Assembly: GCF_036365525.1 (NCBI RefSeq)
Contig: NC_090399.1
Location: 31,404,430-31,468,429, forward strand
Direction: 5' to 3'
Length of the DNA stretch: 64,000 nt
DNA from: Heterodontus francisci
Lineage: Eukaryota
A program made the translations under genes and the position numbers. This document shows positions 16,749 to 39,214 of the stretch, piece by piece. The notes beneath the pieces were generated by a model that saw only the letters and a program-made list of their open reading frames with translations, searched no databases and was not told the DNA's origin. Position 1 is the stretch's first letter; every line of letters begins with the position of its first letter.

Positions 16749-16864
16749 TCATATGACCACGTATATAAAACAACTGTCAACCTAAACCTATAGTCCTGCA
16801 ATGCTACTGCCCTATCAAGGGTGGCACTGTAGCTCCTCACTTCTGGACCTCCCAGTTCCTCAGA
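16749..16864 (-). pseudogene. Putative cytoplasmic exon of the minus-strand NKp30-like pseudogene (ITIM-like relics)
   Basis: Acceptor ttttttcctgcaatacAG is in phase with the TM exon. It reads V*GTGRSRSEELQ/ATLDRAVALQDYRFRLTVVLYT/VI*, which requires two assumed small deletions. Confidence 0.45.
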
Positions 16865-17432
16865 CTGTATTGCAGGAAAAAATATTTTTCAAAATCTTAT
16901 ATCTGTCTATTTATCTCGCCTTTCTAACTCCAATGCATCTGAAGAGTAAGCTTGTTCTTAACTAGCCGTTTGTTGATATTTATTATTAAGCAAGATAATG
17001 GACAATTTCTTCTGATTGTAGTGAAATTACAAAGATAGGCACGTTTCTCTTATCAGAATAAATAGGGAACAGTCAAACCCACAATGATAGGGTGAAATGC
17101 AATTTTTTTCTTCTCTTACTAGAAATACCTTTGGAATCGTGGACACTTCCGGTCTTTGTATAAAAATGTCTTCAGTGATTTCACGTTCCTATCTAAATAA
17201 ATGGGGAAATTGGGAGGATTAAACGTTATCGTCAATTTCAAAATGAAAACATACACCAACACAAGGGAACGGATTTGTATAATTTCACAATTTGTGATTG
17301 TTGAACTTCCATGTTGGGAGAGTGGGGGGTTCAAAAATGTTCGCATAAAGTTGGAGTACTATTTTATAAAAATACAGTTGATACGATTACCACAGTGAAA
17401 GGTTTGGGATTGTATATAGAAACGATAAATAC

Positions 17433-17570
17433 CTTTGGCTTTGTTTCTGCAGGAAATGACAGTCGTTATTGCTGAGAACAGCGCCAGCACAAATGAAGTT
17501 CCTATTATAAACAGGGCTGTCTGTACACCCATGGAACTGCCCGGCTGTTGCCCTGAATTTCTCGTCCTCA
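17433..17570 (-). pseudogene. Stalk + transmembrane exon of the NKp30-like pseudogene (no charged TM residue)
   Basis: cttatcgcAG / 138 nt, phase 1-1 / GTattt. It reads RTRNSGQQPGSSMGVQTALFIIGTSFVLALFSAITTVISCRNKAK and aligns with the + strand TM exon (LFIIGT vs LYIVRG). Confidence 0.8.
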
Positions 17571-17981
17571 CTGCGATAAGAAGACAGATGTTATTTTCTC
17601 CTTCTTTCTTCACGCTCGCCTCCCCCCGCCCCCCTCCCCAACCACAACTACGTGGACCAAGTAACACTTCAACCCTGCAAGAGTTAAATATAAAAATGCT
17701 GCTTATGGGAGATAATTTGAACCTAACCCCTCTCTCTGGGAACTGTCATGATCCGCTGAACGTATTATAATTCGCCCCATTTTACTCTCTATTAAATTCA
17801 ATGGAGTATAATATTGACGCGGTGCAAACCGGAGTTCCACCTTATCCTGTTCATTTCCAGCCCCGCAAGTAATTTCAAATTACATCCGATATTCGCAAAT
17901 TTATTTTTACTTCAACGCTGAAGTGCTTCATTTAATCTTTTTAAACAAAAACATAAAACCAACAGCAGGTAAAATGCTCAT

Positions 17982-18309
17982 CTGTCACAACAAGTGTTGT
18001 TCCTTGCTTATAACATTCACCAGAGGCTATAAATCCCACTTTGCAATAATACGTCGCGAATCGCGCACTGTCACGTTTGTTAATTGAATCGAAGCGCCAG
18101 TCTTTCCGTCGAATTGCTCCCTATTTGGCCCAATTACCTGGCCTTTGTATTCTGGTGTACTGTTGGAAAGTTCAGTTCCACCTCTACTGTTCTTGTATCA
18201 CCTAGTGCCCTAAGTCCTTTGTACACACAGTAGAGAACGGCTATCTTTCCCTCAGTTATATGAATGAATGCTGGGCTTTGAACAATTGTAACGCTCTCAA
18301 CATTCACTG
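17982..18309 (-). pseudogene. NKp30/NCR3-like VJ-type Ig V exon, inactivated
   Basis: Strong acceptor ttttttgctcttttacAG. It reads VNVESVTIVQSPAFIHITEGKIAVLYCVYKGLRALG/*YKNSRGGTELSNSTPEYKGQVIGPNREQFDGKTGASIQLTNVTVRDS/ATYYCKVGFIASGECYKQGTTLVVT. The conserved Trp is TGA, there are two frameshifts, and the donor reads ATgagc. Confidence 0.9.
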
Positions 18310-18497
18310 CTGTAAAAGAGCAAAAAACGTTTCACACTGAATACAGAAACTTACACTGTATTTAGACATGTTTGAGATTCCGCTCCTAAATTAAGCAGTG
18401 GACTGCTGACGGAGCAATGCTAATGTGCGCTGTCTCAAGACCGGTCTTCGCTATTACTGACATTAATCGACTAAAATAAAGTGATTAACTCTATCAC

Positions 18498-18541
18498 TAT
18501 ACTAGCGCACCAGGAAATATCATACACAACTTCAGTTTTAT
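18498..18541 (-). pseudogene. Possible decayed leader exon
   Basis: IKLKLCMIFPGALV lies about 190 bp upstream of the V acceptor. It needs ATA to be a former ATG, and the donor phase is unclear. Confidence 0.25.
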
Positions 18542-19084
18542 TTTCAAATATAAGAATAAAATTTGTGTTTTTTTGCTGAGGGAGAAAAATAACAAACACT
18601 TTTCGGGAGGACAATCATGAAAATGAGCTGATTTATATTTATAAATGTTAAATTTTGTAATCATCAAATTGCAGTAAACTTTAAGTAGTGCCTTTAAAAG
18701 ATAAATAATATGCGATTTATTCCTTCCATAGTAATGTTGAGCACACGACGTTGCTATGGCATTCCAGTTATATATTTGCAAGTATAGCCATAAATGTGCA
18801 GTTTAAAGGCGCAAAGAGGAAGTACAGGCGATATAAAAATATCTTCAAGCTGATACAAAATGCATCACGGTTCTACACAACGTTCTCATGAGCACAATGC
18901 CAAGTGCCTGCCATTAACAGAAACGAAGCAATGTGCAGGACTCCAAGATATAAATGCAGTCTAACTGCTCAATCCCACCGCGAAGGAAGTTCTTTAAATG
19001 CATTACAACTATCGCTCATCCATTTAATTGTTATTTTGCATTTGCAAAGCGATTCTAGAGTTTACTTCTAGCTTTATCTATGCT

Positions 19085-19243
19085 GGGGATAATTTTAACT
19101 TTTCGCCAAGTGTAAAACCGGCGATATCGGATGGGTCGCCCGTTTTCCACCTCCCCCTTTTTCCTGGTTGAAATTAATGAAAGAAAAATTGGGCGGTATG
19201 TATAACGGGTGACCCATCCGATATCGCCAGTTACATTATCATC
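19085..19243. repeat. Palindromic MITE-like hairpin element
   Basis: Arms 19116-19144 and 19204-19232 are reverse complements at 27/29, around a central ttgaaattaatgaa. Confidence 0.7.
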
Positions 19244-19254
19244 AACAGTTACTT

Positions 19255-19985
19255 CGTTCTCACGAAGTTCAATGTGTTAACAGCGCAAGTAGAGATGAAT
19301 AGGTATGATTTAGTGGCAATTATTGAGACGTGGTTGGAGGGAAACCAGGTTTGGGAATTGAATAACGAAGGGTACTCAGTATTTCGGATTGATAGGCAGG
19401 AAGGAAAATGAAGTGGTGTAGCTTTGTTAGTAAAGAAAGAGATCAATGCCGTAGTGAGAAATGATATAGGCACTGGAGATCAAGATGTAGAATCAGTCTG
19501 GGTAGAAATAAGAAATAACAAGGGAAAGAAGACTCTGGTGGGAGTAATCGATAGGTTCCTAAACAGTAGTTCCGCATTGGGGCACAATATAAACCAGGAA
19601 ATACTGGGGACTTGTAAGAAAGGTACGGCAATAATCATGGGCGATTTTAATATGCATATAGGCTGGATTATTTATCTTTGCAAGGGTAGCCTCGAGGGAG
19701 AGCTCATTGAATGTATTAGAGATTGCTTTTTGGAGCAATATGTTATGGAATCAACTAGGAAGCAGGCTATTCTAGATTTGGCATTGTGTAATGAGGTGGG
19801 GTTAATTAATGATCTCATAGTTAAGGATCCTCTGGGGAAGAGTGATCATAGCATGCTAGAATTTCAAATTCAGTTTGAGGGCGAGAAACTGGAGTCCCAC
19901 ACTAGCGTTCTGGAGTTAAACAAAGGTATATAGACATAGACATGAGGTCAGATTTGGCCCTAGTGGACTGGGCAGGAATACTATC
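19255..19985 (+). mobile_element. CR1 endonuclease fragment
   Basis: DLVAIIETWL, ESVWVEIRNNKG, IIMGDFNMH, ILDLALCN and LGKSDH motifs. Confidence 0.9.
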
Positions 19986-19994
19986 AATATCAGG

Positions 19995-21500
19995 CAGTGT
20001 AGGCACTCAGGTCAAAGCCTCTCTATACATGAACAATATTGGATCTGCTGCTTAGATCTGCTGTCAGTTCGCAGACCGTTGAGTAGTTTGAACTAACCTT
20101 GGGAGCCAAGATAAACTGCAGCAAGAGTGAGGCCATGTTCTTTGGGAACTGGGCCGACCAATCCTTTGTCCCCTTTATCGTCAGGTCAAACTGTCTGAAG
20201 GTTCTACGGATATGGTTTAGAGGGACTGGGCTGTGTGCCAAAAACTGGAAGGAGTGATCAGCTATGGTAAACGGAAATTGGGCATGTGGGAGTGGTGCTC
20301 CCTTTCCGTTCCGGCTAACAATCTGATCATTAGACGTTGCTGTACGTGATGTAGGTCTGGCTCTTACCCTACTCTAGTGCTGTGCCAGTCACCTAAGCCA
20401 AATTCCACTTTATTTGAAGATCAACATTTCGTTGTGTCCACAGGTAAACGATCTTCAAACCTCTAGATGAAGGAGGAACAAATGTACTAACGTCACCCTA
20501 CTGCTGATGGTCACCATTGTGTGCAGTTGGATCAAGCTGTGCGTACGTCCCCAGTATGCAAAACACAAATGTGATGAGACTCTAACTGCTTCCGGTGTTG
20601 TGAAGGATGGCCACGTTGCCCTGGAATGCTGCATTCAGTTGGACTGTCCCATACCATCGTTCCTCATGGAAAATTTTGTGTAGAAACCACCTTTGACCAC
20701 GAATCCACAAGGCAGTGATCTGCACATAGCGTCCTCAAGGCCGTGTGGGAAATGGAGATGGAAGATTCTGTCAGATAGTTTCCTGAGCAGACTGTCAAAC
20801 TCATTTGGCAGAATGCCTCATTGCCAGAACATTCAAATAAGCACCAAGATATTGTTTGGTTGGCAGTGAGAAAGGCTCTCCCTGTCAGATCCTTCCTGCA
20901 TGCCCAGAGTCTCACCACCTCGGCACACTGCCCTTGAGATGGCTGTGGTGGGGAAAAGATCATCATCCACCTCCTTCTGGAATGTGCCTTCACAAAGCAG
21001 GCCTGGAAAGGGAGGCATTATTTTTTGTTGAGGTTCATCCGTGGCAACTGTGTAATGCCAGGGGCACACACCGAAATAACATCAACTGCTGCTGGTGGAC
21101 CATCAACTCAATGAGAGACGCCCATTGGTCTGCCTGAAACTTGCTGATCTTCCAATGCAAAGAGCTGACCACCAGTACATTCCAAGGTCCAGGGCTAAGT
21201 GTTGAGGGATGCACTAAAGCTTGGGGCAGCCACCGCAAAGTCTCACTGGGGAAAGGTCACTCTGTAAGGTTTTCCCACAATCGTATACCAAGGGGCTGGA
21301 AACCATATAAATCCCCTGGGACTGTATGAACCAGAGAATGGTTTAGGTACGTAATTCAAATGTGCATTACAAACATACCTGTAATGGCAAGGGTAACGAG
21401 GTATCAAAAAAAAACTGATATTTATTAACTTTATGAAATGTCAAATTTGAATTGTTTTGTGATGTATTTTTACCAAATGTTATGAATAATGTATATTTTT
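19995..21500 (+). mobile_element. Tx1/L1-like ORF2 C-terminal remnant and 3' UTR
   Basis: GAKINCSKSEAMFFGNW, plus the WLAVRKALPVRSFLHA..C...GCG...HLLLEC zinc-binding region. Colinear with 37655-39150. Confidence 0.8.
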
Positions 21501-24500
21501 TGGGGGGGGGAGGGGAATAAAACTACGCAACAGACCAAATATTCACGCCATGATCACGATGGTTCTGAAACTATACCACGGGGAATATTTCCCATTTATA
21601 TTTTAATAAATGTACAAAGTAAGTGTTTGCACAATATGGTTTTTTCCCCTGAAAATAGTGATTGTTGGTACGTTGCATTTTTCACATGATGTCACTAAGC
21701 CATTATAGAGTACTTTTCCAACTTGCCATCGAGGCGTAAAACTGACATTGCGCATTAATTGCCTGTTAGAGACACAATTTACGTTTCAGTTGAAGTGTTA
21801 TTTTTGATCCAATGCTGCACTGAAAAATTAACTTGCCCATTTTCACCTCGGATGCTGATTAGTCAACTCAATGTTTCGAGTGTTTCTGTTTTGCTTTCAG
21901 CTTTCTGGCACTTGCCAAGTGTTTGTATTTTTCCCTGTGTTACATACAGCCAATTTTGGAAACAAATTGAAGTTACAACCACATGCTCGCAATCTTAGTT
22001 TTTTTCTGGCAGTAAAACCGCATTAAACGTCAAACTAAGCGAAGTAGTTAAAAGCTACGTGCAACATTTCAAGATTTCAATAGCACTGACCCAGCTACCG
22101 ATCTTCAGGAAATCTGATATCTGACACATACTGCAAAAATAAATTTGAAAGCTTAAAAAGACAAAAAATAGATGTTCTTTGCTAATGAAGATTATCTGCG
22201 ATAATTATATTCTGACTTGTATTTAATTGGATTATTGAACGATGTAACCGAAGTAATTTACAAGGTGAATAATTAATAGTTAATTCAATATTTGATAACC
22301 GACAGCGAGAAGATTAGAGTTTTCTACTGGTTAAAAGCAATGATGGAATATTTTTGGAGACTTGCAGTGGCGGGAGATATACATCTATATGTATATATAG
22401 CTTTAATTTTTGTCTACTTGTAATTTATCTATCTGGAGAAATGTTTCCTATTGTACTCATTTTTCAATGCGCATTTATATTTATCATCACGATTTTAAGA
22501 AAGTAATTTAAATGGACTGATCATTAACGATGAATGAGCTTCTGGGTGAGTTACTAGAAGCCCATCTCCTGGAAGCATTAATAATTGAATATTTTGGTTC
22601 AAAACAAAGCCGCAGAGTCTTTTTGAATTAGTGAGACTGCATGGACTTTCCTCGCTGGTATCTCTCTTGGGTTGGAGCGAATCGTTTTCACATTCTGCTC
22701 ACAAGAGGTGTAATTCATAATTATACGTCACACACTAACTTCCGTTATCAAGTAACATTGACAACATATAGTTTCATTCCTAACTTAATCTAATATGAAC
22801 CTTGGTTCTGCTTTAGATGCGTAAGGTGAAAAGTGCCCCTTTGCCATTTGGGACAGTTAACCCTGTGGCCGTTTAATAGTTTGGATGAAGAAGCCCATTC
22901 GTCTAAATAATGCCACTCTCTCAGCACCAGACAATCAACAGTGGTTAAATTTCTTGTTCAGGAATGCCTTTGAACTTCAAACTGTTACTTCAAACATTGC
23001 ACCTATGTATATGCATGCGAGCGCCGAGCAATGGAATATGCAAAGGCTTCACAGAATATACCTACGCATGTAAATTTCTGGTATGAACGTTAGTGGGATA
23101 TATGTGACTCTGCAAGTTTACCCGCAGCACAAAAAAGGACAGGTCTATACCAGGAGTCAACCCGAACCTGCTCCGTTCTGGGACGCGTTAGTTTATAACC
23201 TGAGCGTTTTATACCTGCACAAGAACAACAGAGGCTGCTTTTAAAATGAATGTGTTAACTAGGTAACATTGTCAGGACACCGTGGAGTAAGTTTCAACTT
23301 TCGGTGGGGGCGGAAAGCTGTCGGTATCTGTTCCTTTTGCATCGCGGCCGATTTCTTTTCTTTTATCCCTTACCCACTAACCGCCAGCAATACGCACCCA
23401 CCACCACCACCCACCACCACCAACACCCCCCCCCCTCCCCCGCCCCCCACCACCCCCCCCCCCCCCCACCCGCCCAAGCACCCCGCAACGTCCAAACTCC
23501 CACCCTCGCATAGTTCCTCCTCTACTTTTTGTTATGATCCAGATCAAATTGTCTGAATGACAACATGTAACGGAATATGCAGCGCAAAATTTAATCGTTG
23601 CAGCACAAAACACTTAACTGAAGAAAAATGTATTATATTACCATGAGCAGATGTCATGATAAACGCAGTCTAAAGGCTTTGAGGAATTACCACACTCACC
23701 CAAGAGTCCATTACAATGACTGGTGCACTAACAGAGCTCGTGGGAGGAATTTTCAAATTGATACCCGGATTAAAAACTGTTGCGGATTCTGCGTCCGTAC
23801 CAATCACCCGCTATTCATTGCTAATGAAAATCGGTCTTTTCTAACCTGGGGATGGGAAGGAGGCGAAGTAGAAATTTGCCTCAGGCGGTGGTTGCAGTGG
23901 AACAGAATATCAAGCACTGCTTATAAAAGGCGGCCCTTTTTTTGCACCAGCAGCTGAGACGCATTCTTATCCCGAGAGAGCGGCAGATCCGCTCTGCAGA
24001 AGTATTTTTGACTGTTGGCCATAGTTAAAAATGGACGGTATGGAAATAGCCACAGATTATAAACAACGTATGACTTCCATCACATTGAGATCACCGAGTG
24101 TGGAAAGCAGGCGGAATGTATAATAGAAGGCCACTATGTCCATTTTACACCCTCACCAAAGTTAAAATTGATCCCCCTCCACAAGTGTTGATGGTGAAAA
24201 TTACTCGCTGTGTGGTTAAATGCAAAGTAGCTGGACAAGTATTGCTGTTCTGCTTTATTTTTAGCAACCTTGACTTCAAATGTTAGCTGCTTGAATTAAC
24301 CAGCGACTACATAAATACAGTTTTAGCCTGATGATATTTCAAAATAACAGCAACATACTTTTGTGTCTGCTCTGCCTTGACACATTCGTTTATCTGTGCT
24401 TTCACTATAAGTGGATCCTCTGATATTCGTATATTGAAGAGGCAGAGATATGTGCAGCATATTCGGAATGGCTTTCACCTTCATAGCTTGAATGAAATGT

Positions 24501-24562
24501 CTCCTTTTCTGGTTTTGCCTGTTTACTTCACCTCGTTCTCTAATTTAATTACTACAGGAAGA

Positions 24563-24605
24563 ATGAACCCAATCTGCATCCTGTGCATATTAATTCTACT
24601 CTCCA
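24563..24605 (+). CDS. Signal-peptide exon of the plus-strand NKp30-like gene
   Basis: MNPICILCILILLS + 1 nt, then GTAAGT (phase 1). An upstream acceptor actacAG near 24557 suggests a 5' UTR exon. Confidence 0.75.
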
Positions 24606-25513
24606 GTAAGTACATGCTTCATTTTTTTCCCATTTGTTATAATCACCCGAATGTTTCCACATAGTATTTCGAAATACCTATTAAAATGCCAGTATTTTTA
24701 TTAGAACTTAGGACTTTCTGTAGACGGACATCCTGTACTCTGATCTTCCGTCTCTCACAGGTGCAGTGGGGGTGAAATTTTACATTACGTAGGATTTAAA
24801 ACAAGGGTAAGCATGAGTCTCCCGTTTCCGCCCCTCCTGAAATTCAGTTCTATTGTTTTCTATAGAACTCAGCACCGGCTGTGTGTTATAATGGGCGGTA
24901 AAAGCGATTTCATCTGGAGTGCAACCTCAATCATGTCCAATTTAATCTCCAATATATTCAATCTGTAGTCAATGCCAATCAGAGTTGTTCTTTTTTTTTA
25001 TTCCGATGTCCTAAATACGTCTAAACACTGGAAAGCAAATCATGTTGCTTGTAGATTTACCCCTGGTTTTTTAATCGACCGCTCGTTATAGAAACCCGCC
25101 CGATTTTCATCTGCATTGAAATCAATGGAATTAAATTGGTCTTGAACGGTAGCATAAAGTGGGAGATAGAAAAAAGGTAGCCAGTTTTACGTCCTGCCCG
25201 ATTTCCTTTTGCAATAACTTCAATGGGAAAAAACAGGCGCCCAAAACCAATTGTACTCCAAATAGGATGAAAATCAGGCACGTTCTAAAAAAAAAAGCGA
25301 TGGATTGACTCCACCAGGCATTGAACATGAACATTATCCTCTAGTAATCCATAAAACTGGGCATGTGAATACATTCATGCCGTTTGATTGTAAACTTTAC
25401 TGTTTGAATTTTAACGATAGAAAAACAACAGCACAGATTAATCCTCCAATAAAAGAGTGGCTAGCGAACCAGGATATTATGTGCATTGTGATAGAATTTC
25501 AGCTTTCCACTAG

Positions 25514-25811
25514 GCATAAATCTGGCATTGCGAATCTGAAGTCAATGTAACTGCCCACACAGCCAACGTCTCCAAGGCGATAGGGCCTTTTAGCTGGGAC
25601 AAGGACAGCAGGAATAGCACAGAAGTTTCCAATGGAACAGCAGGGTACACAGGACGGATCTACAGACACGAAGAGGATTTATTTCATGCCAGAGATGCGT
25701 CTATGATCATAAAGGATGTTAGAGTGAAAGATACCGGGGTGTATTACTGCAAAGTGCGAATGATGCAACTGGGCAAGGAATATGGAGCAGCAACAAATTT
25801 CACTGTGAGAG
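25514..25811 (+). pseudogene. NKp30-like V exon 1: splice sites intact, internal frameshifting lesion
   Basis: tttccactAG|..INLALRI*, then in another frame HTANVSKAIGPFSWDKDSRNSTEVSNGTAGYTGRIYRHEEDLFHARDASMIIKDVRVKDTGVYYCKVRMMQLGKEYGAATNFTVR|GTAAGT. 298 nt; the first Cys region is lost. Confidence 0.9.
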
Positions 25812-26251
25812 GTAAGTGATTCTCCTGTCTGCAATGTCATGCGACCAGTGGGTGGAATATCTAGCCCCATAATGTTGTGCCTCTTTCTCCGACTGGCACC
25901 TTTGCCCACAACGGCTTCCATATGGTAAATTCCGATTGTGGAATTGTGTCCGCTGCCGGGGAGAGAAAATGTAATCATTTGAAATAACCGGTTACTGACC
26001 AGGAGTGAATTTGACTTGGCAAGAATGCAAAACAAGCCGGATAGCTTTTAGCGCCTCTTATACCACACATCTGATATTCCCTGCTACTGAAGTCAATTGA
26101 ACTGAATATAGGGCCCGTCCATGCCTAATTTCACTCCCATTTGTGTTTAAACAGCAGAAGAATCTGGTGAAAAGGGGGTATGGGATTGGCCGCCCATTGT
26201 ACCCAGAGCCTGATATTCAGCACCACTGCAGTCAATGATATGCAACCTCAA

Positions 26252-26563
26252 ATAAACACAAGAAATGCTGGAACCACTCAGCAGGTCTGGCAGCATCTGT
26301 GGAAAGAGAAGCAGAGTTAACGTTTCGGGTCAGTGACTCTTCTTCGGAACTGACAAATATTAAAAATGTCACAGGTTATAAGCAAGTGAGGTGGGGGTGG
26401 GGCAAGAGATAACAAAGGAGAAGGTGTAGATTGGACAAGGCCACAAAGCTGACCAAAAGGTCATGGAGCAAAGGCAAACAATATGTTAATGGTGTGTTGA
26501 AAGACAAAGCATTAGTACAGAAAAGGTGTTAACGGACTGAATATTGAATAGCAGCAAGTGCAA
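26252..26563 (-). mobile_element. Penelope pLTR fragment
   Basis: Closely matches 11895-12205. Confidence 0.9.
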
Positions 26564-26756
26564 AGGCTGTGTTTGCTGACAAGGCAACCACGAGATGGCG
26601 CAGCACTTGCACATGCGCAAATTCAGGCTCTTCAACAGGAACGTCGCTGTCTGCCACGTTCAGGCAGCTGCCAGGATTAAAGATGGCGCTGCTCAATTTA
26701 TCACAGGACATGCTGATAGCTAGACGGTTCCAGCAAACTAATCCCCCTTACATTAA

Positions 26757-27034
26757 CAAAAACAAGAAATGCTGGAATCACTCAGCAGGTCTGGCCGCAT
26801 CTGTGGAAAGAGAAGCAGAGTTAACGTTTCGGGTCAGTGACCCTTCTTCGGAACTGACAAGTATTAAAAATGTCACAGGTTATAAGCATGTCATAAACAT
26901 TCTGAAGAAGGGTCACTGACCCGAAACGTTAACTCTGCTTCCCTTTCCACAGATGCTGCCAGACCTGCTGAGTGATTCCAGCATTTCTTGTTTTTGTTTC
27001 AGATTTCCAGCATCCGCAGTATTTTGCTTTTATT
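26757..27034. mobile_element. Inverted Penelope pLTR pair with 13-bp TSD
   Basis: A minus copy is followed by a plus copy. CCCCTTACATTAA flanks the pair at 26744-26756 and 27035-27047. Confidence 0.9.
26897..26936 (+). ncRNA. Minimal type-I hammerhead ribozyme motif (Penelope pLTR)
   Basis: CTGAAGA-A-GGGTC-act-GACCC-GAAA-CG-TT: core boxes, a 5-bp stem II and the palindromic AACGTT stem III. Confidence 0.65.
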
Positions 27035-27884
27035 CCCCTTACATTAAGTTGGATGGAAGCCCAGGAATATGCTACTATGTAGTTATACAATACTAATGCA
27101 ATCCTCAGAGCCATTTATTATTCCTGTAATCCTATTAAATACAAAAGGAATTTTATGATTGAATTTCCATTAGAAGATAGTGAATTTGCACCCCGATCAA
27201 TGGAAAGGAAAATTGGGCAGAGTATAAATTGTGCTGCTAATTCATTATTCTGATTTGTTTATATGACTGACCAAGACTGATTTCACCCGAACTAGGCTAC
27301 TCACTCCCGCCCCATTGGCCGCTCTCCCCACCTGGCAACTCACTTTCTCCCCCTCATCCCCACCGGCCGCTATCCTGCTGACCCCCCCCCCCCTCCCCAA
27401 ACATCAGCTGCTCACTCCAGACCTTGCTGCACGCACCCACACCGCCCCCCACTTCATGGCCAATTGTTCCCCGCTCTCCGGTCTCGCGCTCACTTCCAGC
27501 CACCACCACCACCCCCCCCCTTCAGCCACTAGCTCTCGGCCCCCACCATTTCCCTCCTCTCAGCCACTCACTCCCACATTTGATCAGTCTCCACACGACA
27601 CCTAAAGAAGCAAGGCAGACAGCAAGCGGTGACAGGGTGACGTAGGCATGAGTGGCTGAAAGGAGGAAAGTGGCATGGCCTAGTGCTAGCGGCTGGAGGG
27701 GGTTGGCATGGAAGTGCAGAGTGAAGAGCCAGAGAGCGGGGTGGCGTGAAGTGAGGAACAATCAGCCAGGGGAGTGGGGGGAGCAGCGAGGTCTGGAGCG
27801 AGTGGCTGAGGGGAACAAGTGTCATGGCCTGGAGTTGCCGATGGGGGGAGGGCTCCAACCTCAAAGTCTCCCATTCCACCTGCT

Positions 27885-28180
27885 GAACTTGCAACCTCTA
27901 CCAACTAGAAGGAGCACAGCATCAAATGCATGGAAACACCACCACCTGCAAGTTCCCCTCCAAGTCAAACACCATCCTGACTTGGAACTATATCACCGTT
28001 CCTTCACTGTTTCTGGGTCAAAATCCTGGAACTCCCTTCCTAACAGCACTGTGGGTGTACCTACCTCACATGCACTGCAGCGTTTCAAGAAGGCCCCCAT
28101 CTTCTCAAGGGCAATTGGGGATTGGCAATGAATGCTAGACAGCCAGCAATGCCCACATACCATGATTAAATAAAAAAAAA
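27885..28180 (+). mobile_element. Family B LINE 3' tail
   Basis: Same tail as 4200-4572, ending in an A run. Confidence 0.8.
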
Positions 28181-28362
28181 TTCAGCCCCTTCCTCCTGCC
28201 GAGTGGGGGAGGGGGGAGTGCGGTGTGGACACCCGATGATGCTTAATTGCGCATGCACGATGATAGATCAGACGTTGGCGCTGCGAGATGACGTCATGCT
28301 GCGCATCCACTTCTTAGGCCTGGTGCCATGCAGCTGCGCATGTGCGCCACTTGACGCATCAC

Positions 28363-28445
28363 GAGCTCTGATGAAAGGTCACTGACCTGAAACGTCAACT
28401 CTGCCTCTCTCTCCCTAGATGCTGACATACCTGCTGAGTTTATCC
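28363..28445 (+). ncRNA. Hammerhead motif in a short Penelope pLTR fragment just upstream of V exon 2
   Basis: gagct-CTGATGA-A-AGGTC-act-GACCT-GAAA-CGTC-aactc, with a GUC cleavage triplet and imperfect stem I. Confidence 0.6.
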
Positions 28446-28529
28446 TTCATAACCGTTCCTGCATGGCTGTCTCAGGAAGCTCCAACCCGCAGTCATAAAA
28501 TAGCATTTTTTAATTTATTTGGTTTCTGG

Positions 28530-28862
28530 GAATTAACACCGAGTTCAGAGTTATTCAGAAGTTGCCGAGTATTCAGGCGGTGGAAGGGCATTCAGTGCTC
28601 ATCCCCTGTACCCACACAGTCAATGTGTCTATTGGGAAGGTGAGTTATAGCTGGTACAAGAATGCCAGAAATGGAACAGAAGTTTCAAATGGAGTAGCAG
28701 AATACAGAGGACGGATCTTTTGGCCCAAAGAAAAGGATTTTGTTAACGCTTCCATTGAAATAAAGGAGGTGAGAGTGAACGATTTCGGGATGTATTACTG
28801 CAACATGAAAATGAGAGGACACGACAAGAAATATGGAGCAGGAACATATCACACTGTGAGTG
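28530..28862 (+). CDS. NKp30/NCR3-like V exon 2: open frame, both splice sites degenerate
   Basis: INTEFRVIQKLPSIQAVEGHSVLIPCTHTVNVSIGKVSYSWYKNARNGTEVSNGVAEYRGRIFWPKEKDFVNASIEIKEVRVNDFGMYYCNMKMRGHDKKYGAGTYHTVS. C, W, YYC and GxGT are intact, and EVSNGVAEYRGRI resembles the human NKp30 EVRNGTPEFRGRL as I recall it. The acceptor position reads GG (28528-28529) and the donor reads GTccat. Confidence 0.85.
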
Positions 28863-29259
28863 GTCCATCATTATGTCTGCAATATCGTGCAACTGATGAG
28901 TGAGAGATCAGGCCGCACAATGTGGCTCTTTATCTAACTGGCACCACTGCCCAGAACGGCTGCCATGTGGCAAATTCCGATTGTAGAATTGTGTCTCCGC
29001 TGCCTCGAGGAGACAATTAAATCATTTAAAATAACTAATTACTGACCAGGTGCGAATTTGACTTGGCGAGAGTGCAAAACAATGGCCTTTAACAACTGTT
29101 ATACAACTCACCTGAAATTCAGCTCGACTAAGTCAATGGAACTGAATGTCAGTGGGCCGTATAATGGGCAACTGATGTCACATCACCTGTCTTGCATCGC
29201 TGCTGAACCGTCACGGTGGGTGAGGATGAGGCTAAATTACATAGCCCCCAAAAATACGC

Positions 29260-31010
29260 TCGTGATGCGCGATTGCCCCACGCCCACTCAATGTTCTGCA
29301 GGAATTATGCCAGCTTCCCGCTCCCGTCTCATTACCGAGTTTGTAGCATGCAGCTCGTGCCAAGCATGCTGTTGCAAGGCTGCACACCTCAGCAGCGGGC
29401 CCTACATTGTGAGGAGGTACCAGGAGTGAAAGCTTGCCTACACTCTTTAAATGGGAGGAACATTGAGGCTGGAACAGAAGGTGGAAGTCCTTGTACATCT
29501 CACTGTGACATGGAAAAAACGGAATAATGCCGCAACATGGGAGAAAGTGTATTCCAACTGTTCCCGGATGCTGTGTTGGAGACCTTGGGGGAGGAGGTGC
29601 AAAGGAGGAGATAAATTATGTATCCACAGCAGGCCAGGAGGCCTCTAGACAGCATCTCAGATGGCAGTGTACCCATTAGCTATGGCGATGAATGCCAGGG
29701 GTCCAGCCCCGAGGACCTGGATGTCATTCTGCAAATAATACAATGACCTCACATGAGTGGTCGAGGTGAATGAATTCATCTTCAAAGGCCATATCCCACC
29801 AACTTCACCATTACCGTCAAACACTGCTTAAAGCACCACAATCAGCGACCAACAATCTCTATCAGTCAGGATACTACCTAACATTCATAGCTGCACCTCA
29901 CCCTCAAAGACTTAACACGGCTGCATGCCTAACACCAACATCTCACAGCTTTAACACACTGCCAGCGATGACACTATGGCAGGTACATCGTCCAAACAGA
30001 TTGCACCCCATTCGTTGGCACAAATCCCTCTCTCTTGCAGGACAAGGTTGCACATAACCAGAGGCAGCAGGTGTTAACTGGCGGAGGGCAGGCCTGCCCA
30101 CATGACCTTACCCCATTGAGGAGATAGTGTTTGCCATCATTCGAGTTGTCATTGTTGACATTGAAGCCAGCCGTGGGGTTAAAACCATAGGCCATGATGA
30201 TATAATCATACCAAACCCACCTCCTCAAATCCCACTTCCCCTTCATCTCACAACCTCTCCTAATTTATAAGCTTCAGATGGTGTAAGCATGCAACTCTTG
30301 CTTTCCCACAACTTTACCCTTGTGCTTTTCTCCTTTCAGATACCTGAGTACTGTCACGTGTCCAGACAGCGATGAAAGAGCAAAACAACACCATCACTCA
30401 GTTTCACACTTGCAGTCCTCAACTCAGATACTGGCACTGCACAGAATTTATAGGATAGCATAGAGGTGGGGACTGGACTTGGTAAGATACCGGGCATGAG
30501 TACCCTGCAGCCAGGACAGGGAACACAGGTTGTGCAGGTGCTAACTCGCTGGAGGGTGAGGTTGCACATGAGTTCTGCAAAGGAAGCAGGTGAGCTGTTC
30601 GATGGGGCAGGGTACAGAAGAACGTTAATGGGTAGACGCAATGGAATTCTTCTAACCAGAAAGCCAGCATGCACTGCCAAGGAGTATGGAAGAGTCTGGC
30701 ACAAACTTTACACTGAGCTTTGCACAGAGCTTGGAACCCATCCTTTCCAAAATAAACTGGTGGCCAACTCCATTAGCACACCAGTGCACCGAACCATGAT
30801 GCAACGTCTGATGGCCAATGACTCAGCTTCAAGCAGAAGCCATCTAAATACTGAAGTAGAAACTCAGATTTCCATCATGTAAGCTGAGATTGCTGCCATG
30901 CAACCACAGACTGCTGCCCTCCTGACTGTGGACATGGGTGTTCAAAGGGGCTTGCAGGATGTCATCAGGTCAACAATCTGCCCTATAACAAATTACTAGG
31001 ATTACTCGAG
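29260..31010 (+). mobile_element. Harbinger-type Myb/SANT-like gene remnant
   Basis: Decayed LFPDAVLETL.EEVQRRR...AMNARGPAPRTW...YNDL exon, and a second exon after the acceptor at 30040 (DKVAHNQRQQVLTGGGQAC). Same layout as 47060-49088. Confidence 0.6.
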
Positions 31011-31267
31011 CTCGGGAAGGGGAGGGGGGTGGTTTGTGATGATGAGGATAGCGATGGCTCCTTGGCGAATGAACCTCATAACACCCAAAACTGCGTCCGA
31101 ACTTTGCACTGGACGGGGGGTGGGGGTGGGGTGGTGGAGGAAGGGGGAGGAAATTGGACTCTTCAGGAATGCGAAAGAGGCAGGTTGTATGTTTTGATAG
31201 CTGGTGAGTATTGTCATAAATCGGGATTTCACTTTGAAGGGTGGTCCTTCACAACCATTCCTGCAAG

Positions 31268-33065
31268 TTTTTTTTTAATTCATTCGTGGGATGTGGCATC
31301 GCTGGCTAGGCCAGAACTTATTGACCAACACTAATTGCCCTTGAGAAGAAGATGGTGAGCTGCCTTCTTGAACTGCTCCAGTCCTTGTCAGGCAGGTACA
31401 CCCACAGTGCTGTTAGGAAGGGAGTTCCAGGAGTTTGACAAAGTGACAGTGAAGGAGCAGCGATATCGTTCCAAGTCAGGATGGTGTGTGGTTTGGAGGG
31501 GAACCTGCAGGTGCTGGTGTTCCTATGCATCTGCTGCTCTTGTCCTTCTAGGTAGTAGGTGTCTCGGGTTTAGAAGGTGCTGTTGAGGAACCTAGTTGCA
31601 TAGCTGCAGTGCATCTTGTAGGTGGTACACTCTGCTGCCACTCTGCATCGGTGGTGGAGGGTATGAATGTTGAAGGTGGTGATGGGGTAGCAACAAACAG
31701 GCTGCTTTGTCTTGGATGGTGTCGGGCTTCTTAAGATTTGTTGAAGCTGCACCCATCCAGGCAAGTGCAGAGTTTTCCATCACACTCCTGACTTGTGCCT
31801 GGTAGATGGAGGACAGACATTGGGGAGAGAGGAGGTGAGTTTATCACTGCAGAATTCCCAATCTCTGACCTGCTCTGGTAACTACAGCATTTATATGGCT
31901 GATCCAGTTCAGTTTCTGGTCAATGGCTACACCCAGGATGTTGATCGTGGAGGAATCAGCGTTGCTAATGTCATTGCACGTCAAGGAGAGATGGTGTATG
32001 AGATCTCATGTATGAGATAGCCATTGCCTGGCACTGTGTGGCGCGAATGTAACTTGCCACTTATCAGCCCAAGCCTGGATGTTGTCCAGGTCTTTCTGCA
32101 TATGGACATAGGCTGCTTCAGTATCTGAGGAATTTTAATGGTGCTGAACATTGTGAAATCATCAGCGAACATCCCCATTTTAACCTTATGATGAAGCAAC
32201 TGAAGATGGTTGGGCCTAGGACACTACCATGAGGAACTCCTGTAGTGATGTCCTGGAACTTAGATGATTGACCTCCAACAGCCACAACCATCTTCCTTTC
32301 TGCTAGGTATGACTTCAGTCAGCAGAGAGTTTTTCCCCAATTCCCATTGACTCTAGTTTTGCTAGGGCTCCTTGATGCCATACTTGGTCAAATGCTGCCT
32401 TGATGTTAAGGGCACCCACTGTCGCCTCACCTCTGGGATTCATCTCTTTTGTCCATGTTTGGACCAAGGCTACAATGAGATCCAAAGCTGAGTGACCCTG
32501 GCGGAACCTAAACTGAACATCAGTGAGGAGGTTATTCCTGAGTAAGTGCTGCTTGATAGCACTATCGATGACACCTTCCATCACTTTACTCATGATTGAG
32601 AGTAGACAGATAGGGTGGTAATTGGCCAATTTTCCACATTGTCAGGTAGATGCCAGTGCTGTAGCTGTACTGGAACAGCTTGGCTCGGGGTACAGCTAGC
32701 TCTGGAGGACAAGTCTTCAGTACTAGTGCAGGGATTTTGTCAGGGCCCATAGCCTTTGCAGTATCCAGTGCCATCAGCCATTTCGTGCTATCACGTGGAG
32801 TGAATCAGAATGGCTGAAGACTGGCATCTCTGGTGTTGGGGAACTCAGGAGGAGACCGAGATAGATCATCAGTTGTTTAATTGTCCACCACCATTCACAC
32901 CTGAGCGTGGCAGGACTGCAGAGCTTAGATCTGATCCATTGGTTGTGGGATCGCTTAGCCCTGTCTACTGCATGCTGCTTCCGCTGATTGGCATGCAGGT
33001 AGTCCTGTGTTGTAGCTTCACCAGACTGACACCTCATTTTTAGGTATACCTGGTGCTGCTCATGC
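31268..33065 (-). mobile_element. Family B CR1-type LINE, 5'-truncated
   Basis: KAMGPDKIP, NYHPICLLSIMSKVME, AAFDQVWH and MFADD motifs plus the 3' tail. Confidence 0.9.
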
Positions 33066-33771
33066 TGGTGACTGTCTTTCAAATTTCTAATTGCCAGTCA
33101 GATCGCAGTGATGTTTACGTTTTTATACATAACATTGACAATTAGCTTGGATGTTTATGTAAAATTGGGACTGGAATTGGTCAGCATCACTGATCCTCAG
33201 TAACTAAATCTGGCTGGCACAATAACCTGTAGCACCGAGACAATGAGAGACACCCCCCTGTCCATCTCTTCAGCCCAGGTCTACTGCAGTGGCAATCACC
33301 CCTCTGCATTGGGGGACTAAACAAGCATTCCTCCACAAACTAGATGGTATAGTGGATGGGCAAATGTGCTCAGTGTTTCAATTATAAAATCAAGGAGAGC
33401 TTCGGAGCATATCAGCCATTTCACGTCTCTGTTCTGCTGTGTCTTATCTAGGGAAACAGCAGAAATATAGTTAATTTCATTCCTTTGCAAGTAAATGTTA
33501 AAATTCAGAGAGGATAATATGTATTTCATATGTTAGCCAGTGAACTATATGGTCCTTTTTTAGTTAAACCACTGGTTACCACCGTTTATTTGATTTCTCA
33601 CTAATGTCTGATTGTGTTGTTCACCTGGAAGTTCGTCAAGATTTCAGGACCCGATCCATTCTCAGCTGGGTAACTGAGTGCGGTCATTGTTAAATATTCG
33701 AGACAGGCGTCGCTCTTTTATTAAAAACGGCATGCCTCCAGGAAAATGCGCCTTGTTTCTTTTATTTTCTG

Positions 33772-34822
33772 GGATTGTTCCTCAGACTTTCTCGATTATT
33801 CAAAGTCAGCAGAGGATATGGAGGCACTGGTGAAGATGCAGAAGAGATTTACGTAATTACGCCAGATGGGCACTACTATCAGAAACGAGTCTGTGTCTCT
33901 TTTCTCTTGGAAACAGAAGGCTGAGGACGGGTCTTTAAAATTATGAAGGGGTTCGATAGGCTAGATGTTAAAAAGATGTTTCCACTTGTGAGGAAGTCCA
34001 AAACCGGGGGCCATAAATATGATTACATACTAATATATAGCAATTAATCCAGTAGGAAATTCAATAGAAACCTTTTCATCCACAGAGCGATGAGCTTGTA
34101 GAACTCACTATCACATTAATTTGTTAAGACAACTGACATAGGTGCATTTAAGGGAAAGTTAGATAAAGGAACAGAAGAATATGCAGATGAGATTAGATGA
34201 AGAGCGGCAGGATATGGCTCTTGTGGAGCATTTGTTTTTATTCGTTCTGGGATGTGGGCATCGCTGGCTAGGTCAGCATTTATTGCCCATCCTTAATTGC
34301 CCTTGAGAAGGTGGTGGTGAGCCACCTTCTTGAACCACTGCAGTCCACGTGGGGTAGGTACACCAACAGTGCTGTTAGGAAGGGAGTTCCAGGATTTTGA
34401 CCCAGTGACGGTGAAGGAACAGCAATAAAGTTGCAAGTCAGGATGGTGTGTGGCTTATAGGGGCACTTGCAGGTCGTGGTGTTCCCCTTCATCTGCTGCC
34501 CTTGTCCAGCTAGATGGTAGAGATCGCAGGTTTGGAAGGTATAACACTGGCACACAGCAAGCCTGTTTCCGTGTTGCAAGTTCAACCTATTAAATTCGGC
34601 ATTAATAAAATGGAAAGGCCGGTTACCAATCTGTTCCATATCTGTGTCAGGAGCGAGTACAAGGGGCTAGAACTTATGCACAGACCAAATAATGCAGTTT
34701 TGTGACAAAATATAGGAAATCTGGTATTTAGATTCTTACATTTTGAAATATATTCAGTTACAATGGAAACTGTTTTACCCAAGCATAACATAAAAGGCAA
34801 CAGCTACTCTTGGATGTGCGGG
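33772..34822 (+). pseudogene. Heavily decayed third V exon split by LINE insertions
   Basis: 33772-33818 reads IVPQTFSIIQSQQRI. 34541-34822 reads ITLAHSKPVSV/CKFNLLNSALIKW...EYKG...NNAVL...SGI*...GNS/LLDVR. Q, C and W spacing matches the other V exons. Confidence 0.5.
33813..34540. mobile_element. Family A LINE 3' end (+, about 33813-34230) and family B tail (-, about 34232-34540)
   Basis: Similar to 15900-16300 and to 31268-31580 respectively. Confidence 0.75.
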
Positions 34823-35220
34823 ACAATATCCGATTGGCTGAGCGAGAAATTCGTCACCCATCGATAAATACCTAAAAATGGACAACGTGTAAGAACCTGC
34901 TCTTTAGAATTCAATCATATACTTCGGATAACTTTAACTTGACTCGCCGGGCGGGAAATCCAGAGCGGTTGGAATGCCGGATTTGCACCCCGCCCAATAT
35001 TGCACTTCATTGCCCTCAATCAGACAGTAAGGTCAGCACTGCATCCGATTCTATCAATTTCCAGATGGGTAGATTAGGTTAAAATTGCCCCGTGATCTGT
35101 ATTGCTAATTCATTATCGACCATTTTGTGTTCCCGACCAAGACGAATTTTTACCCCAGAGTCAGGCAACAGCAGAGAGTAAGAATGATGCCGTTACCGAG
35201 TTTTGACTTGTTCTCCATAG

Positions 35221-35331
35221 GTTCTGTGGCTGAACCGAACACGGGACTGAGTGCAAACGCAGTTCTGTATATTGTACGAGGAGTTGTTGTCATCACAATG
35301 ATCATCAGTATTTTATTCTGGAGAATGGGAG
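35221..35331 (+). CDS. Stalk + TM exon with Arg (activating NKp30-type)
   Basis: ttctccatAG / 111 nt, phase 1-1 / GTaaga. It reads GSVAEPNTGLSANAVLYIVRGVVVITMIISILFWRMG. Confidence 0.85.
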
Positions 35332-36109
35332 GTAAGATTATTCAATATCTTTTCAGTAAATAGTCGACAGTTCTGAATTGAAACTGCTTTCTCTGAATGT
35401 TGCCATCATGGAAGCGACAGGTGTTAACACTGGATAGTACAACTCTCTCGTTCTACAGACGGATAACAGCGCATGCATATATTCACATTTGTCTGAAATT
35501 TCTTCGCCTCCACTTTAGAGGAGAAATTATCCAATTGAAAATAAATGGTTTAACACTTCCAGTAAAAAGCAGAGGGGGAAAAAATTCACACGAACACCTA
35601 ACACATTAAGCAGCCCAGGTGTAATTTCAGTCTGGAATCTCCCCACCTACACGGTACTTTTCCCCAACAATGCACTCCAGCAGCAACTTGAACGAACACT
35701 GTCTATTGTTTCCAGGTGACTTTTCCGTTGCCCACATTAGCTAGCATTGCACACTGTCTGGGTCACATTGCGACCTCAGGCGTAGAAGTTCATCTCGGGT
35801 CTTCGTGCTAACTGAATTGAATAGGTTGGTTGTTTGCTCCGCACAGAACCTGATACTCAGTTCCATTGCAGTCAATAGATATCAGACGCTATGTACAACA
35901 GGCAGCCAATCCGATATCGCCCACTTTCAGCCACTGCCTGAGATGAATTTCCAACCCGAATTGCCAAATTAGGAATTGCTTAATGTTATTTACTGTTTAA
36001 AACATTTCAATTTAGAAGTCACGTTATATTGTGTCTATATGAAACATTTGAAATACTAAGGTTAATATGGTTAATATGATTCTGCATTTTTGACTAGCTT
36101 GACGATTTT

Positions 36110-36275
36110 GGGGGAGACTGTGGCGTACTAGTACTGTCACTGACCTAGTGATCCAGAGGCCCAGGTTAGTGCCCTGAGGCCAAGAGTTCAATTCCCACTA
36201 CGACAGCTGAACAGCATTTAAATTTAATAAATAAATTCAATATATTAAAGGAAAATCAGTCATGGTGCCATCGAT
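36110..36275 (+). mobile_element. tRNA-derived SINE head (degraded)
   Basis: A-box-like gtggcgtactagt and B-box-like gagttcaattccc. Confidence 0.55.
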
Positions 36276-37654
36276 TGCATTTCCATGACTGATTCTGGAG
36301 ACAGACTGCACAAGTTCTTAAATATCTCAGTCACACGTGTGATGTTCTTTCGTTGTTTTATCTTTTGATTTCTTAGTTTTTCCTGGCCAATTAGTCCTCA
36401 CTGCTTGTATACACCAAAGTTAAATGGAAATTTTAATCATTTTCTGTAAGACGGTATTTTGGTGATTCATAGTCTCATTAGAGAACATTAGCAATTAATT
36501 AACTAGTAATTTCCTAGAGGAAAGAGGCTGACAGGGAGATTTAATAGAAGTGTTCAAAATCAGGAAGGGTCTTTAATATAGTCCACTGAGAGCCGAGTCG
36601 ATAACAAGAAGACACAGATTTCAAATAACTGACTAAAACAGCCAGGGGGAGATGAGAAGATTTTTCTGTACTCAATGTTGATCAGATCTGGAATGCAGAA
36701 TACAAACACACTGACTATTTCACAAAGGGTAAGTCACTTATTTTATAACCTGGGTTCTTTTAAATTGATAGAAGGAAATATAAGGGCAGATGTCCTTGTT
36801 CTCGTGTCTTGGGCTATTGGATCGCCTGAGCACAGAGGGTAAAGGAAAACTGAGGGTGGAAGAGCACACATTCGAAGAAGAGCCTCATTCCACCGGGCCA
36901 CCTCGGCCCACCTCCACAACTCCCCCCTCCCCACCTCTCCCCCCCGCACCCCGCCCCTGCTCCCGTCCCCACGACCCTTCCTTGCCGCCCGTCGCCACCT
37001 CCAGATTGCCCGAGTCCAGGTGCTGGGACAGAAAGATTGTGCCCCTGTTTGAACTCCTGCTCACTGTCTGACCCCAGTCAGAAGCATGATGGTCCGGATA
37101 AGCTACTAGAGAGCTGTCCATGGAAGGATATTCCAGCTAGATGGAAACTGATAGAATACGAGAAGGAAGCAAGGGGGGGGGGGGGGGGCGGGGGGCGCAG
37201 GTATCAACTACAGGGCAAGACTGTATGAAAAAACATAATAATAATGTTGCGTCAATTATATTTGCAGCAGTTCGCAGCATCTGCCCTTCATTTGGAGTGA
37301 AGAAGGTTCGTACACAGCGGTTTTGATATTTTTTGTTGTGGAATATTAATGTGAAGCAAAGTATCATGGACTTCAAAGAAATAGATTACCATATGCGTTA
37401 GTCATTGATGCCGGTGCTGGGGTGAATAAAATGCTCCAAAAAACAGTGCTGGCCTTACAGGTAAACAGCAGTGCCATTTATAGTTTGTATTTGTTGAGTG
37501 AGGAAGGGGTTAAGCTGGTGGGTGCATTAAAAATTAAAACAGTCTCTGCCAGCTCCATCATTGTCACGTGCAGAGTAGAGCTCCCTCCCGAAGTATCATG
37601 ACCATAAGGTGATGATTCGAGTTTAGCTGGCATCAAAGTTACCAATCATGATCT

Positions 37655-39150
37655 TTTTGACTGTGACAGAATGCGCTATCTCACACATTGGCTCTTTGGC
37701 CAAAGTAAATCACAGCCAGATCGAGGCCTTGCTCTTTGGGAACTGGGCCTACCGATTCATTGTCCCCTTCACCGTCAGGTCAGACTACCAGAAGGTGCTG
37801 GGGATATAGTTTGGAGGGGCCAGGGCATGCGCCAAAAACTAGAAGGAGTGAATAGAAACTAGGCATAAGGGAGCAAAGCTCCCTCTCCATTATGGTTAAG
37901 AACCCGATCATCAGGTGCGAAGTGCTCTTGGTGCTGTTCTACATGGCACAGATTGGTCCACACAACACTCCTGCACGGTGGTAGTCACCCAAGCTATCTC
38001 CATTTTATCTGGAGATTGAAAATGGACCATGTGCATAGAGCCACAACATTCAAGCCTGTAAAGGAGGAAAAAACGTACCAACGTCGCTGTCATCCTGATG
38101 GCCACATTTGTGTGCTGCTGCATCAAGCTATTATTAAGCCTGCGGTACGCAAACAACAAGTAGCACTACGTGCTGAGGTTCTATCTATCCCTCGTGTTGC
38201 AAAGGATGGGGCTGGCCACATTGTTATGGAACGGTCCATTCAGTTGGACCGTGCCTTACCACCTGACCCTCACGGAATTTTTTTTTACAGAAAAGCACCC
38301 TTGACAACAAGCCCATCAGGCAGTGGTCTGCACATGACGTCCTCGAGGCCCTGTGGGCAAAGAAGATGGTGGATACTGTTGGATGGTTCCCCGACAAAAC
38401 TGTCAAAGTCATTTGGCAGAATGCCTTATCGACAGAACATTCAACCAAGTACCAAGATGTAGCTTGGCTGATGGTAAGAAGGGCCCTCCCTGTCAGATCC
38501 TTTCTGCACATCCAGAGCCTCACTGCTGCCCTTGATGAGCTATGGTGGGGAAGATATTGTCATCCACCTCCTTCTGGATTGTGCCTTTTTAAAGCAAGTG
38601 TGGATAAAGATGCAGCCGTTTTTTGTCAAGGTTTACTCCGAGTAGCTCTGCAAAGCAAGACTCAGTGCTCTACAGGTTGTTTCAAAGAACCACACTGAGA
38701 GAAGCATCAGCTGCTCCTGGAGGACCATCAACTCAGTGAAAGACACTCTTTGCTCTCTCCAAAACCTGCTGGTCTTCCAGTGCAAAGAGTTGTCGATGAC
38801 TGTGTGTTGCAGACTGGCACATTCCAAGGTCCATGTTGGGGGATGCACTAAAGACTGGGGCAGCTGCCACAAAGGCCGAATGGGGATAGGCCACTGTGTA
38901 AGGTCCTACCAGTATAGTATATTGATGTGCTGAAGCCCATGTGAAACAGCTCGGGTTTTATGCACCAGAGAATGTTTGACATGAAATATAAATGTACATT
39001 TTAAACATAACCTGCAATGGCAAGAGTAGTGAGGCACCTCATGTACTGTATTGAAAGAAACTGATCTGGATTGCACTTTAATGTCAAATTTGAACTGTCA
39101 CGTGATGTATTTTTTACAAATTTTATGAATGAAGTCTATTTTGGGGGAAA
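37655..39150 (+). mobile_element. Tx1/L1-like ORF2 C-terminal remnant and 3' UTR
   Basis: QDVAWLMVRRALPVRSFLH; colinear with 19995-21500. Confidence 0.8.
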
Positions 39151-39185
39151 GGTATGCTCTCTGACCTCTTTTTTGCTTTGCACAG

Positions 39186-39214
39186 TTATCACCTGGAGGT
39201 TCGAGGCACATTGA
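39186..39214 (+). CDS. Candidate terminal cytoplasmic exon (VITWRFEAH*)
   Basis: Strong acceptor ctcttttttgctttgcacAG, in phase with the TM exon, giving a short tyrosine-free tail. No canonical AATAAA seen nearby. Confidence 0.45.

Follow-up and report, generated by a model that had tools for sequence, protein, structure and literature searches.

Human NKp30 carries an Arg in the outer part of its transmembrane (TM) segment, by which it couples to CD3zeta/FcRgamma, and a short tail without motifs, and it is, to our knowledge, the one natural-killer receptor that can be traced from sharks to humans. Kinlein et al. in 2021 are said to have described shark NCR3 as a multigene family of eight divergent subtypes that is linked to the major histocompatibility complex (MHC). 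How activating and inhibitory members arose in the NKp30 family is relevant to how balanced innate recognition originated. Here we analyse a stretch of 64,000 nt of the horn shark Heterodontus francisci (NC_090399.1), hereafter the window, and all coordinates below are window positions. An earlier examination of the letters alone (the sequence-only reading) had proposed that two head-to-head NKp30-like genes with opposite signalling designs make up a paired-receptor system in this window. We find instead that the locus is two decayed additions to the known shark NKp30/NCR3-like multigene family. The minus-strand gene is a pseudogene of an inhibitory-type receptor, and the plus-strand gene, of activating type, is probably dying. 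Taken as a whole, we put a probability of about 0.7 on the window holding part of the NKp30/NCR3-like cluster of the horn shark in a state of decay, with a dead minus gene and a failing plus gene as head-to-head neighbours and not a pair. The exons of the two genes are as follows (P numbers denote family proteins).

Minus-strand gene:
17982-18309, minus strand: V exon of an NCR3-like pseudogene, read in three frames, 80% identity to horn shark P0095 over 109 residues
17433-17570, minus strand: uncharged TM exon (..LFIIGT..), 73% identity to P0095 over 45 residues
17129-17192, minus strand: first cytoplasmic exon (DRNVKSLK..), 64 nt, match to P0095
14813-14866, minus strand: tail-type exon (..SSCWVGNQ), 54 nt, 75% identical to a stretch of horn shark P0007
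10143-10229, minus strand: exon with an immunoreceptor tyrosine-based inhibitory motif (ITIM; VQYSAL at 10211-10194), 80% to P0095 and 84% to P0007

Plus-strand gene:
24563-24605, plus strand: leader exon (MNPICILCILILLS), phase 1, donor CCA/GTAAGT (the slash marks the exon boundary)
about 25532-25811, plus strand: V1 relic, 70% identical to P0008
28530-28862, plus strand: V2 exon with an open frame, 82% identical to the third V domain of P0002
35221-35331, plus strand: Arg-bearing TM exon (..LYIVRGVVVITM..), sharing 63% identity with basking shark P0018
39186-39214, plus strand: tail exon VITWRFEAH and then TGA, homologous to the start of the P0018 tail

Much of the layout proposed from the letters was borne out. 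The two genes are divergent and stand about 6 kb apart, the measured spacing from the minus V exon to the plus start codon at 24563 being 6.25 kb; the minus V exon and its TM exon with LFIIGT exist, the plus TM exon with its Arg (LYIVRG) is present, the plus tail is exactly 9 residues followed by TGA at 39212-39214, and lesions are present in both genes. The opposite signalling designs also hold, an uncharged TM and an ITIM exon on the minus side against an Arg TM and the 9-residue tail on the plus side. The count of two V exons was wrong, as there are three, the third being the 5′-truncated V1 relic. With the plus-strand V open reading frame (ORF) as query, tblastn found V exons in the window at 28562-28903 (+), 25556-25846 (+) and 18197-18060 (-), and tblastn with 9 family proteins gave no V exon in the window beyond these three. 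A longer minus tail does exist (17192-17129 and perhaps 14866-14813 and 10229-10143), but not at 16749-16864 where it had been placed, and the last two exons lie outside the interval that had been considered. The candidate tail exon at 16749-16864 has no similarity to about 160 family proteins or to ITIM exon DNA, and it is without a clean ITIM.

The V exons are far above chance (tblastn E 1e-55 for V2 against P0002 and 2e-31 for minus V against P0095), and all three extend through a J-like motif (G-x-G-T-x-L-x-V in the family) to the donor position, i.e., they are of the single-exon, non-rearranging VJ type. A phmmer search of 1.84 billion representatives with V2 returned 370 proteins at E<=0.001, 70 at <=1e-10 and 5 at <=1e-30, and 14 of the 29 relatives that were looked up (from nurse, elephant, zebra and horn shark, lungfish, frogs and turtle) are named NCR3 or NCR3-like. 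Among solved structures, human NKp30 is the best match both for V2 (E 3.6e-09, the next family at 3.3e-05) and for V1 (E 9.9e-08, the next at 6e-05), and in Foldseek NKp30 takes ranks 1-3 for V2 with a structural TM-score of 0.79-0.80. The minus-type P0095 matches NKp30 (1.1e-08) and SIRP-alpha (1.6e-08) about equally. A tree was made of 58 rows and 116 columns, the rows being 55 of the 181 extracted domain envelopes (126 were left out) and 3 rows from the window; it holds no T-cell receptor (TCR), immunoglobulin (Ig), CD28 or SIRP domains and cannot exclude those families. The cartilaginous-fish rows form one clade in it (support 94) that includes both V types of the window as well as nurse and elephant shark NCR3. 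The minus V stands beside P0095 (100*) in a starred clade with proteins of white shark, catshark and bamboo shark, and V2 stands beside domain 3 of P0002 (94), together with domain 2 of catshark P0003 (95*). The NKp30/NCR3-like nature claimed for the V domains is therefore upheld for V2 and V1 by their structure matches, and is probable for the minus V from the clade shared with named NCR3 proteins.

The pairing itself did not survive. According to PMC3533184, paired receptors are defined by very similar ectodomains. The locus fails this test because the ectodomains are only 35% identical (minus V against V2, over 100 residues) and are not sisters; constraining minus V and V2 as sisters costs 130 log-likelihood units and is rejected by the approximately unbiased (AU) test (p 6.45e-05). 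The two V exons are thus related, as had been claimed, in the sense of belonging to the same family, but not as near copies. Both V subfamilies each occur in several shark orders, and the subfamilies of the minus and plus genes split before the shark orders did; on this evidence the minus and plus genes would not be derived from each other. Another property of paired receptors is that both partners are functional and expressed. Here three frameshifts and the loss of a donor count against the minus gene, and the plus gene has two splice lesions and no contig over its leader, V1 and most of V2 in any of the three runs.

The TM exons were said to be alignable, and in part they are. The plus TM exon can be aligned with its Arg opposite Gly or Ala, Gly being the residue of the minus gene, but this is only modestly supported: for plus against minus TM, 25 of 2000 shuffles score as high or higher, and tblastn gives no link at E<=10. 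The corresponding counts are 2/2000 against P0095, 545/2000 against P0017 and 357/2000 against frog NCR3. The alignment suggests that the uncharged TM exon of the inhibitory subfamily may have arisen when an Arg-bearing NKp30 TM exon lost that residue. Bamboo shark P0017 (XP_043533794) has two V domains of the minus-gene clade together with an Arg-bearing TM and a short tail; it resembles an activating receptor in a subfamily that is otherwise of ITIM type. Seen across species, a single V clade therefore contains both designs. Having on and off forms is characteristic of the shark NCR3-like multigene family as a whole and did not arise at this locus.

The minus gene is called a pseudogene on the strength of several lesions taken together: a V exon in three frames that has lost its invariant Trp, an AT donor, a frameshift in the cytoplasmic exon, a stop in the ITIM exon, the lack of a leader in our scans, and a long branch. 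Its V translation aligns with P0095 (XP_067865381, annotated as natural cytotoxicity triggering receptor 3-like isoform X2) only across three successive frames, and the identity given above was computed with X at the two breaks. The first break is a deletion of about 11 nt near 18199 that takes the region of the Trp41 codon, and the second is a 1-nt deletion near 18056, ahead of TYYC. The J motif reads YKQGT / KQGTTLVV, with the first Gly changed to Lys. The donor is lost, there being AT at 17981-17980 (A instead of G after the last G of the exon), and the acceptor acag/cag is retained. It may be noted that P0095 and P0155 are two annotated isoforms of the intact paralogue that are one Ala apart, which fits alternative use of a tandem acag/cag acceptor, and the same tandem acceptor is kept in the minus pseudogene (18309-18313, minus strand). 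The minus TM exon has splice sites that look good and is of phase 1 at both ends. In the first cytoplasmic exon there is one extra T within a T run, bringing the frameshifts to three in total. The 54-nt exon at 14866-14813 has a phase mismatch with the exon upstream, and the ITIM exon carries an in-frame TGA at 10175-10173; exon order points to both as parts of the minus gene.

No convincing leader was found for the minus gene by a BLOSUM scan with 5 family leaders, by a scan with the P0095 leader or by a scan for ATG, hydrophobic core and phase-1 donor. The top P0095-like match, at 14795 (minus strand), was rejected, as it lies downstream of the V exon, is without a phase-1 donor and does not outscore the top matches of the five-leader scan. 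The tree branch of the minus V is 0.15, about three times the 0.053 of the intact paralogue. It had been set out beforehand that the Gly in the minus TM might be drift from an Arg after inactivation, which would show as Arg in the intact genes. Three intact minus-type relatives (horn shark P0095, white shark P0157 and catshark P0158) all have an uncharged TM together with ITIM tails, P0095 with two ITIMs, and the Gly is therefore native and not drift. Judged by its VxYxxL motifs, an intact receptor of the minus type would recruit phosphatases. Between the tail exons at 14.8 kb and 10.2 kb lies an ORF of 548 aa at 12470-14116 (minus strand), with reverse transcriptase and a GIY-YIG-like end (..LLYIGETKRRLGDRFAEH..), that looks like a Penelope-like element.

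In the plus gene the leader at 24563 is the best hydrophobic ATG-plus-donor candidate on both strands of 18314-28560; leader-motif regex searches gave nothing useful. Its V1 exon lacks the 5′ part and the first Cys, has stop codons just upstream and aligns with V2 only from about 25554, its donor G/GTAAGT being intact. The J motif is GAATNFTV in V1 and GAGTYHTV in V2, the latter with His for Leu in the J strand. At the V2 acceptor there is GG at 28528-28529 where the family has AG, the expected position being fixed by the P0095 isoforms that differ at the cag/cag acceptor, which is still visible in the minus V. The V2 donor reads G/GTCCAT as against G/GTAAGT in V1, a loss of 3 nt, and a strong GTGAGT stands at 28856, 7 nt upstream, the use of which would put the TM exon out of frame. 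The TM exon has the acceptor ccatag/ and the donor G/GTAAGA and is of phase 1 at both ends. The tail of P0018 continues for about 40 residues (about 50 in total), whereas the horn shark has TGA there and, further on, a change of frame.

The plus gene would then be the horn shark counterpart of the basking shark gene, which encodes a V domain, then a TM whose outer third holds an Arg, and lastly a short motif-free tail, i.e., a design of the NKp30 type that, by analogy with mammalian NKp30, would signal through an acidic adaptor with an immunoreceptor tyrosine-based activation motif (ITAM). In the horn shark copy, one V exon would be a stump and the open V exon would be left without a normal acceptor and most of its donor. 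Because of the V1 stump and the loss at both ends of V2, the plus gene is probably no longer made into a receptor. A further uncharged TM exon, of the P0002/P0007/P0008 type, placed between V2 and the Arg TM exon would have given one gene two signalling modes, but a search of the window turned up no such exon. A query with the TM and tail of P0018 for the Arg-type module elsewhere returned P0018 alone (1 of 13 candidates).

The alternative that survives best, though we consider it unlikely, is that the plus gene is live, being spliced from the leader to V2 through a cryptic acceptor and the weak donor and on to the Arg TM and the 9-residue tail, and expressed only in unsampled cells or tissues. 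Several observations count for it and thereby against a failing gene. V2 is open and keeps every invariant column of the family (6 of 6 invariant and 11 of 11 nearly invariant columns in an alignment of 26 sequences), and its predicted fold is a confident, NKp30-like V domain (pLDDT, the predicted local distance difference test, 90.4). Clean exons with good splice sites encode the leader, TM and tail, and the phases all fit (1-1-1-1), and there is an in-phase cryptic AG at 28549-28550, 21 nt inside V2. A short tail is also normal for adaptor-coupled receptors. On the other side, the canonical acceptor is gone, the donor has decayed to GTCCAT with the stronger out-of-phase site just upstream, and the Leu of the J strand has become His. 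No annotated product was seen either: among proteins of 62-198 aa, none has three 5-residue words in common with the V2 ORF. The representatives searched by phmmer are a 50%-identity library, in which the product of the plus gene could sit under another representative. For the dead minus gene, the point that weighs against our reading is that the exons at 14.8 kb and 10.2 kb are linked to it by exon order only.

Contigs of three runs, all from one sample of unknown tissue, guessed only to be RNA and each with 0.03 of the sampled words, were placed on 23400-29399. In all three runs the depth was 0 in the bins over the leader (24400-24799), V1 (25400-25999) and most of V2 (28600-28999), which stands against a live plus gene but is no proof of silence. 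Bins with any depth numbered 14, 13 and 14 of 30 and were confined to repeat copies at 26.2-28.45 kb plus a few low bins. One of them, 28400-28599, includes the first 70 nt of V2 and so speaks for the opposite case; we ascribe its depth, without proof, to a repeat copy that ends near 28453. The repeat copies concerned are short and lie at 26244-27035 and 27877-28453, including an inverted pair at 26755-26998 (87% identical), and the same short repeats recur at 11.9, 48.3-48.5, 56.6 and 61.3 kb. They form a very abundant, probably transcribed SINE-like (short interspersed nuclear element) family, as their summed contig depth exceeded 100,000 in the three runs.

The close relation of V2 to another gene leads to two further alternatives. 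The 3′ exons of a triple-V NKp30-like neighbour (P0002/P0151) lie at 57390-57425 and 63143-63310 on the minus strand, so that this gene ends tail-to-tail with the plus gene; its tail ..NQDGNLLESDPLCM / DVNQEEQSIDTPME is matched exactly across the intron, and QDYEYEELNTT fits isoform X1. V2 has 82% identity to domain 3 of P0002 and at most 60% to the other family V domains compared. It is distinctly improbable, in our view, that the plus gene is alive or was so until very recently and that it became an activating partner by exon shuffling, the triple-V neighbour's third V exon having been copied to a place before the ancestral Arg TM module that the basking shark has kept. If true, this would show a cartilaginous fish in the act of forming a paired receptor that then failed. 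We give still less credence to the view that the true pairing is between the plus gene and this neighbour (on the minus strand, from about 57 kb), V2 being the copied third V exon before the old Arg TM module, even though a V-exon copy placed before an Arg TM module is a classic route to an activating partner. The identity just given and the sister position in the tree (support 94) argue for it, as do the order of a V1-type and then a Vc-type domain, which is common to P0002 and catshark P0003, and the mapping of tail parts of P0002 and P0151 in the window (63310-63143 and 57425-57390). But the match extends to just one of the three V domains of the partner, and the plus gene looks splice-defective and unexpressed. 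It is hardly credible that the lesions stem from faulty assembly and that the animal itself has two intact genes, since only two of the breaks are of a single base (the 1-nt loss in the minus V and the extra T in the T run of the cytoplasmic exon) and the others are unlike that (the deletion of about 11 nt, GT to AT, AG to GG, the 3-nt donor loss, the missing 5′ part and the in-frame TGA). Two unpaired neighbours in decay is thus the reading that we retain.

Direct copies of a 1.4 kb element, 68% identical, lie at 20105-21506 in the intergenic space and at 37699-39147, the second ending 39 nt before the acceptor of the plus tail exon, and fragments of it are seen at 1653-2007. A long low-complexity run at 23400-23480, also intergenic, is G-rich (C-rich on the plus strand), and reads are reported as cut there. 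Further transposon-derived ORFs are a reverse transcriptase at 40392-42110 and a gag-like ORF near 5 kb. No MHC gene was found in the window, the remaining long ORFs being transposon-derived.

The locus adds little that is new. It shows both designs in the horn shark cluster, a native uncharged inhibitory TM, and turnover by decay. Three modest points may be added to this: the Arg TM module of basking shark type is apparently being lost in the horn shark, ITIM-type and Arg-type members from different species share one V clade, and a neighbouring gene contains a V domain closely similar to the plus one.

Compared with the known paired receptors (KIR, LILR, SIRP, PILR and CD300/MAIR), the two genes of the window are alike in that the halves have opposite signalling and are neighbours in one cluster; they differ in that the ectodomains are far apart and not sisters and at least one partner is dead. 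The claim of a paired-receptor system at this locus falls on that low identity, on the separate subfamilies and on the rejected sisterhood. The likeness to human NKp30 (PDB 3NOI, 3PV6, 6YJP) lies in its being the best sequence and fold match for V2 and the best sequence match for V1, and in the Arg of the outer TM and the short motif-free tail of the plus gene, a combination that the minus gene does not have. It differs in that the identity is about 31% and the plus gene once had two V exons, and in that the minus type ties with SIRP-alpha and has ITIM tails. With the shark NCR3 family the window shares single-exon, non-rearranging VJ-type V domains, the setting of a multigene cluster and the common clade (support 94), the difference being that both window genes are decayed. 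The nearest single genes show the same contrast. Basking shark LOC144695539 (P0018, XP_078422539) has the Arg TM exon, the tail start and a V1-type V domain of the plus gene, but it is an intact gene model in which there is a single V domain and the tail is about 50 residues long. Horn shark P0095 has the V, the TM, the first cytoplasmic exon and the ITIM exon as in the minus gene, but it is an intact gene model with two ITIM exons.

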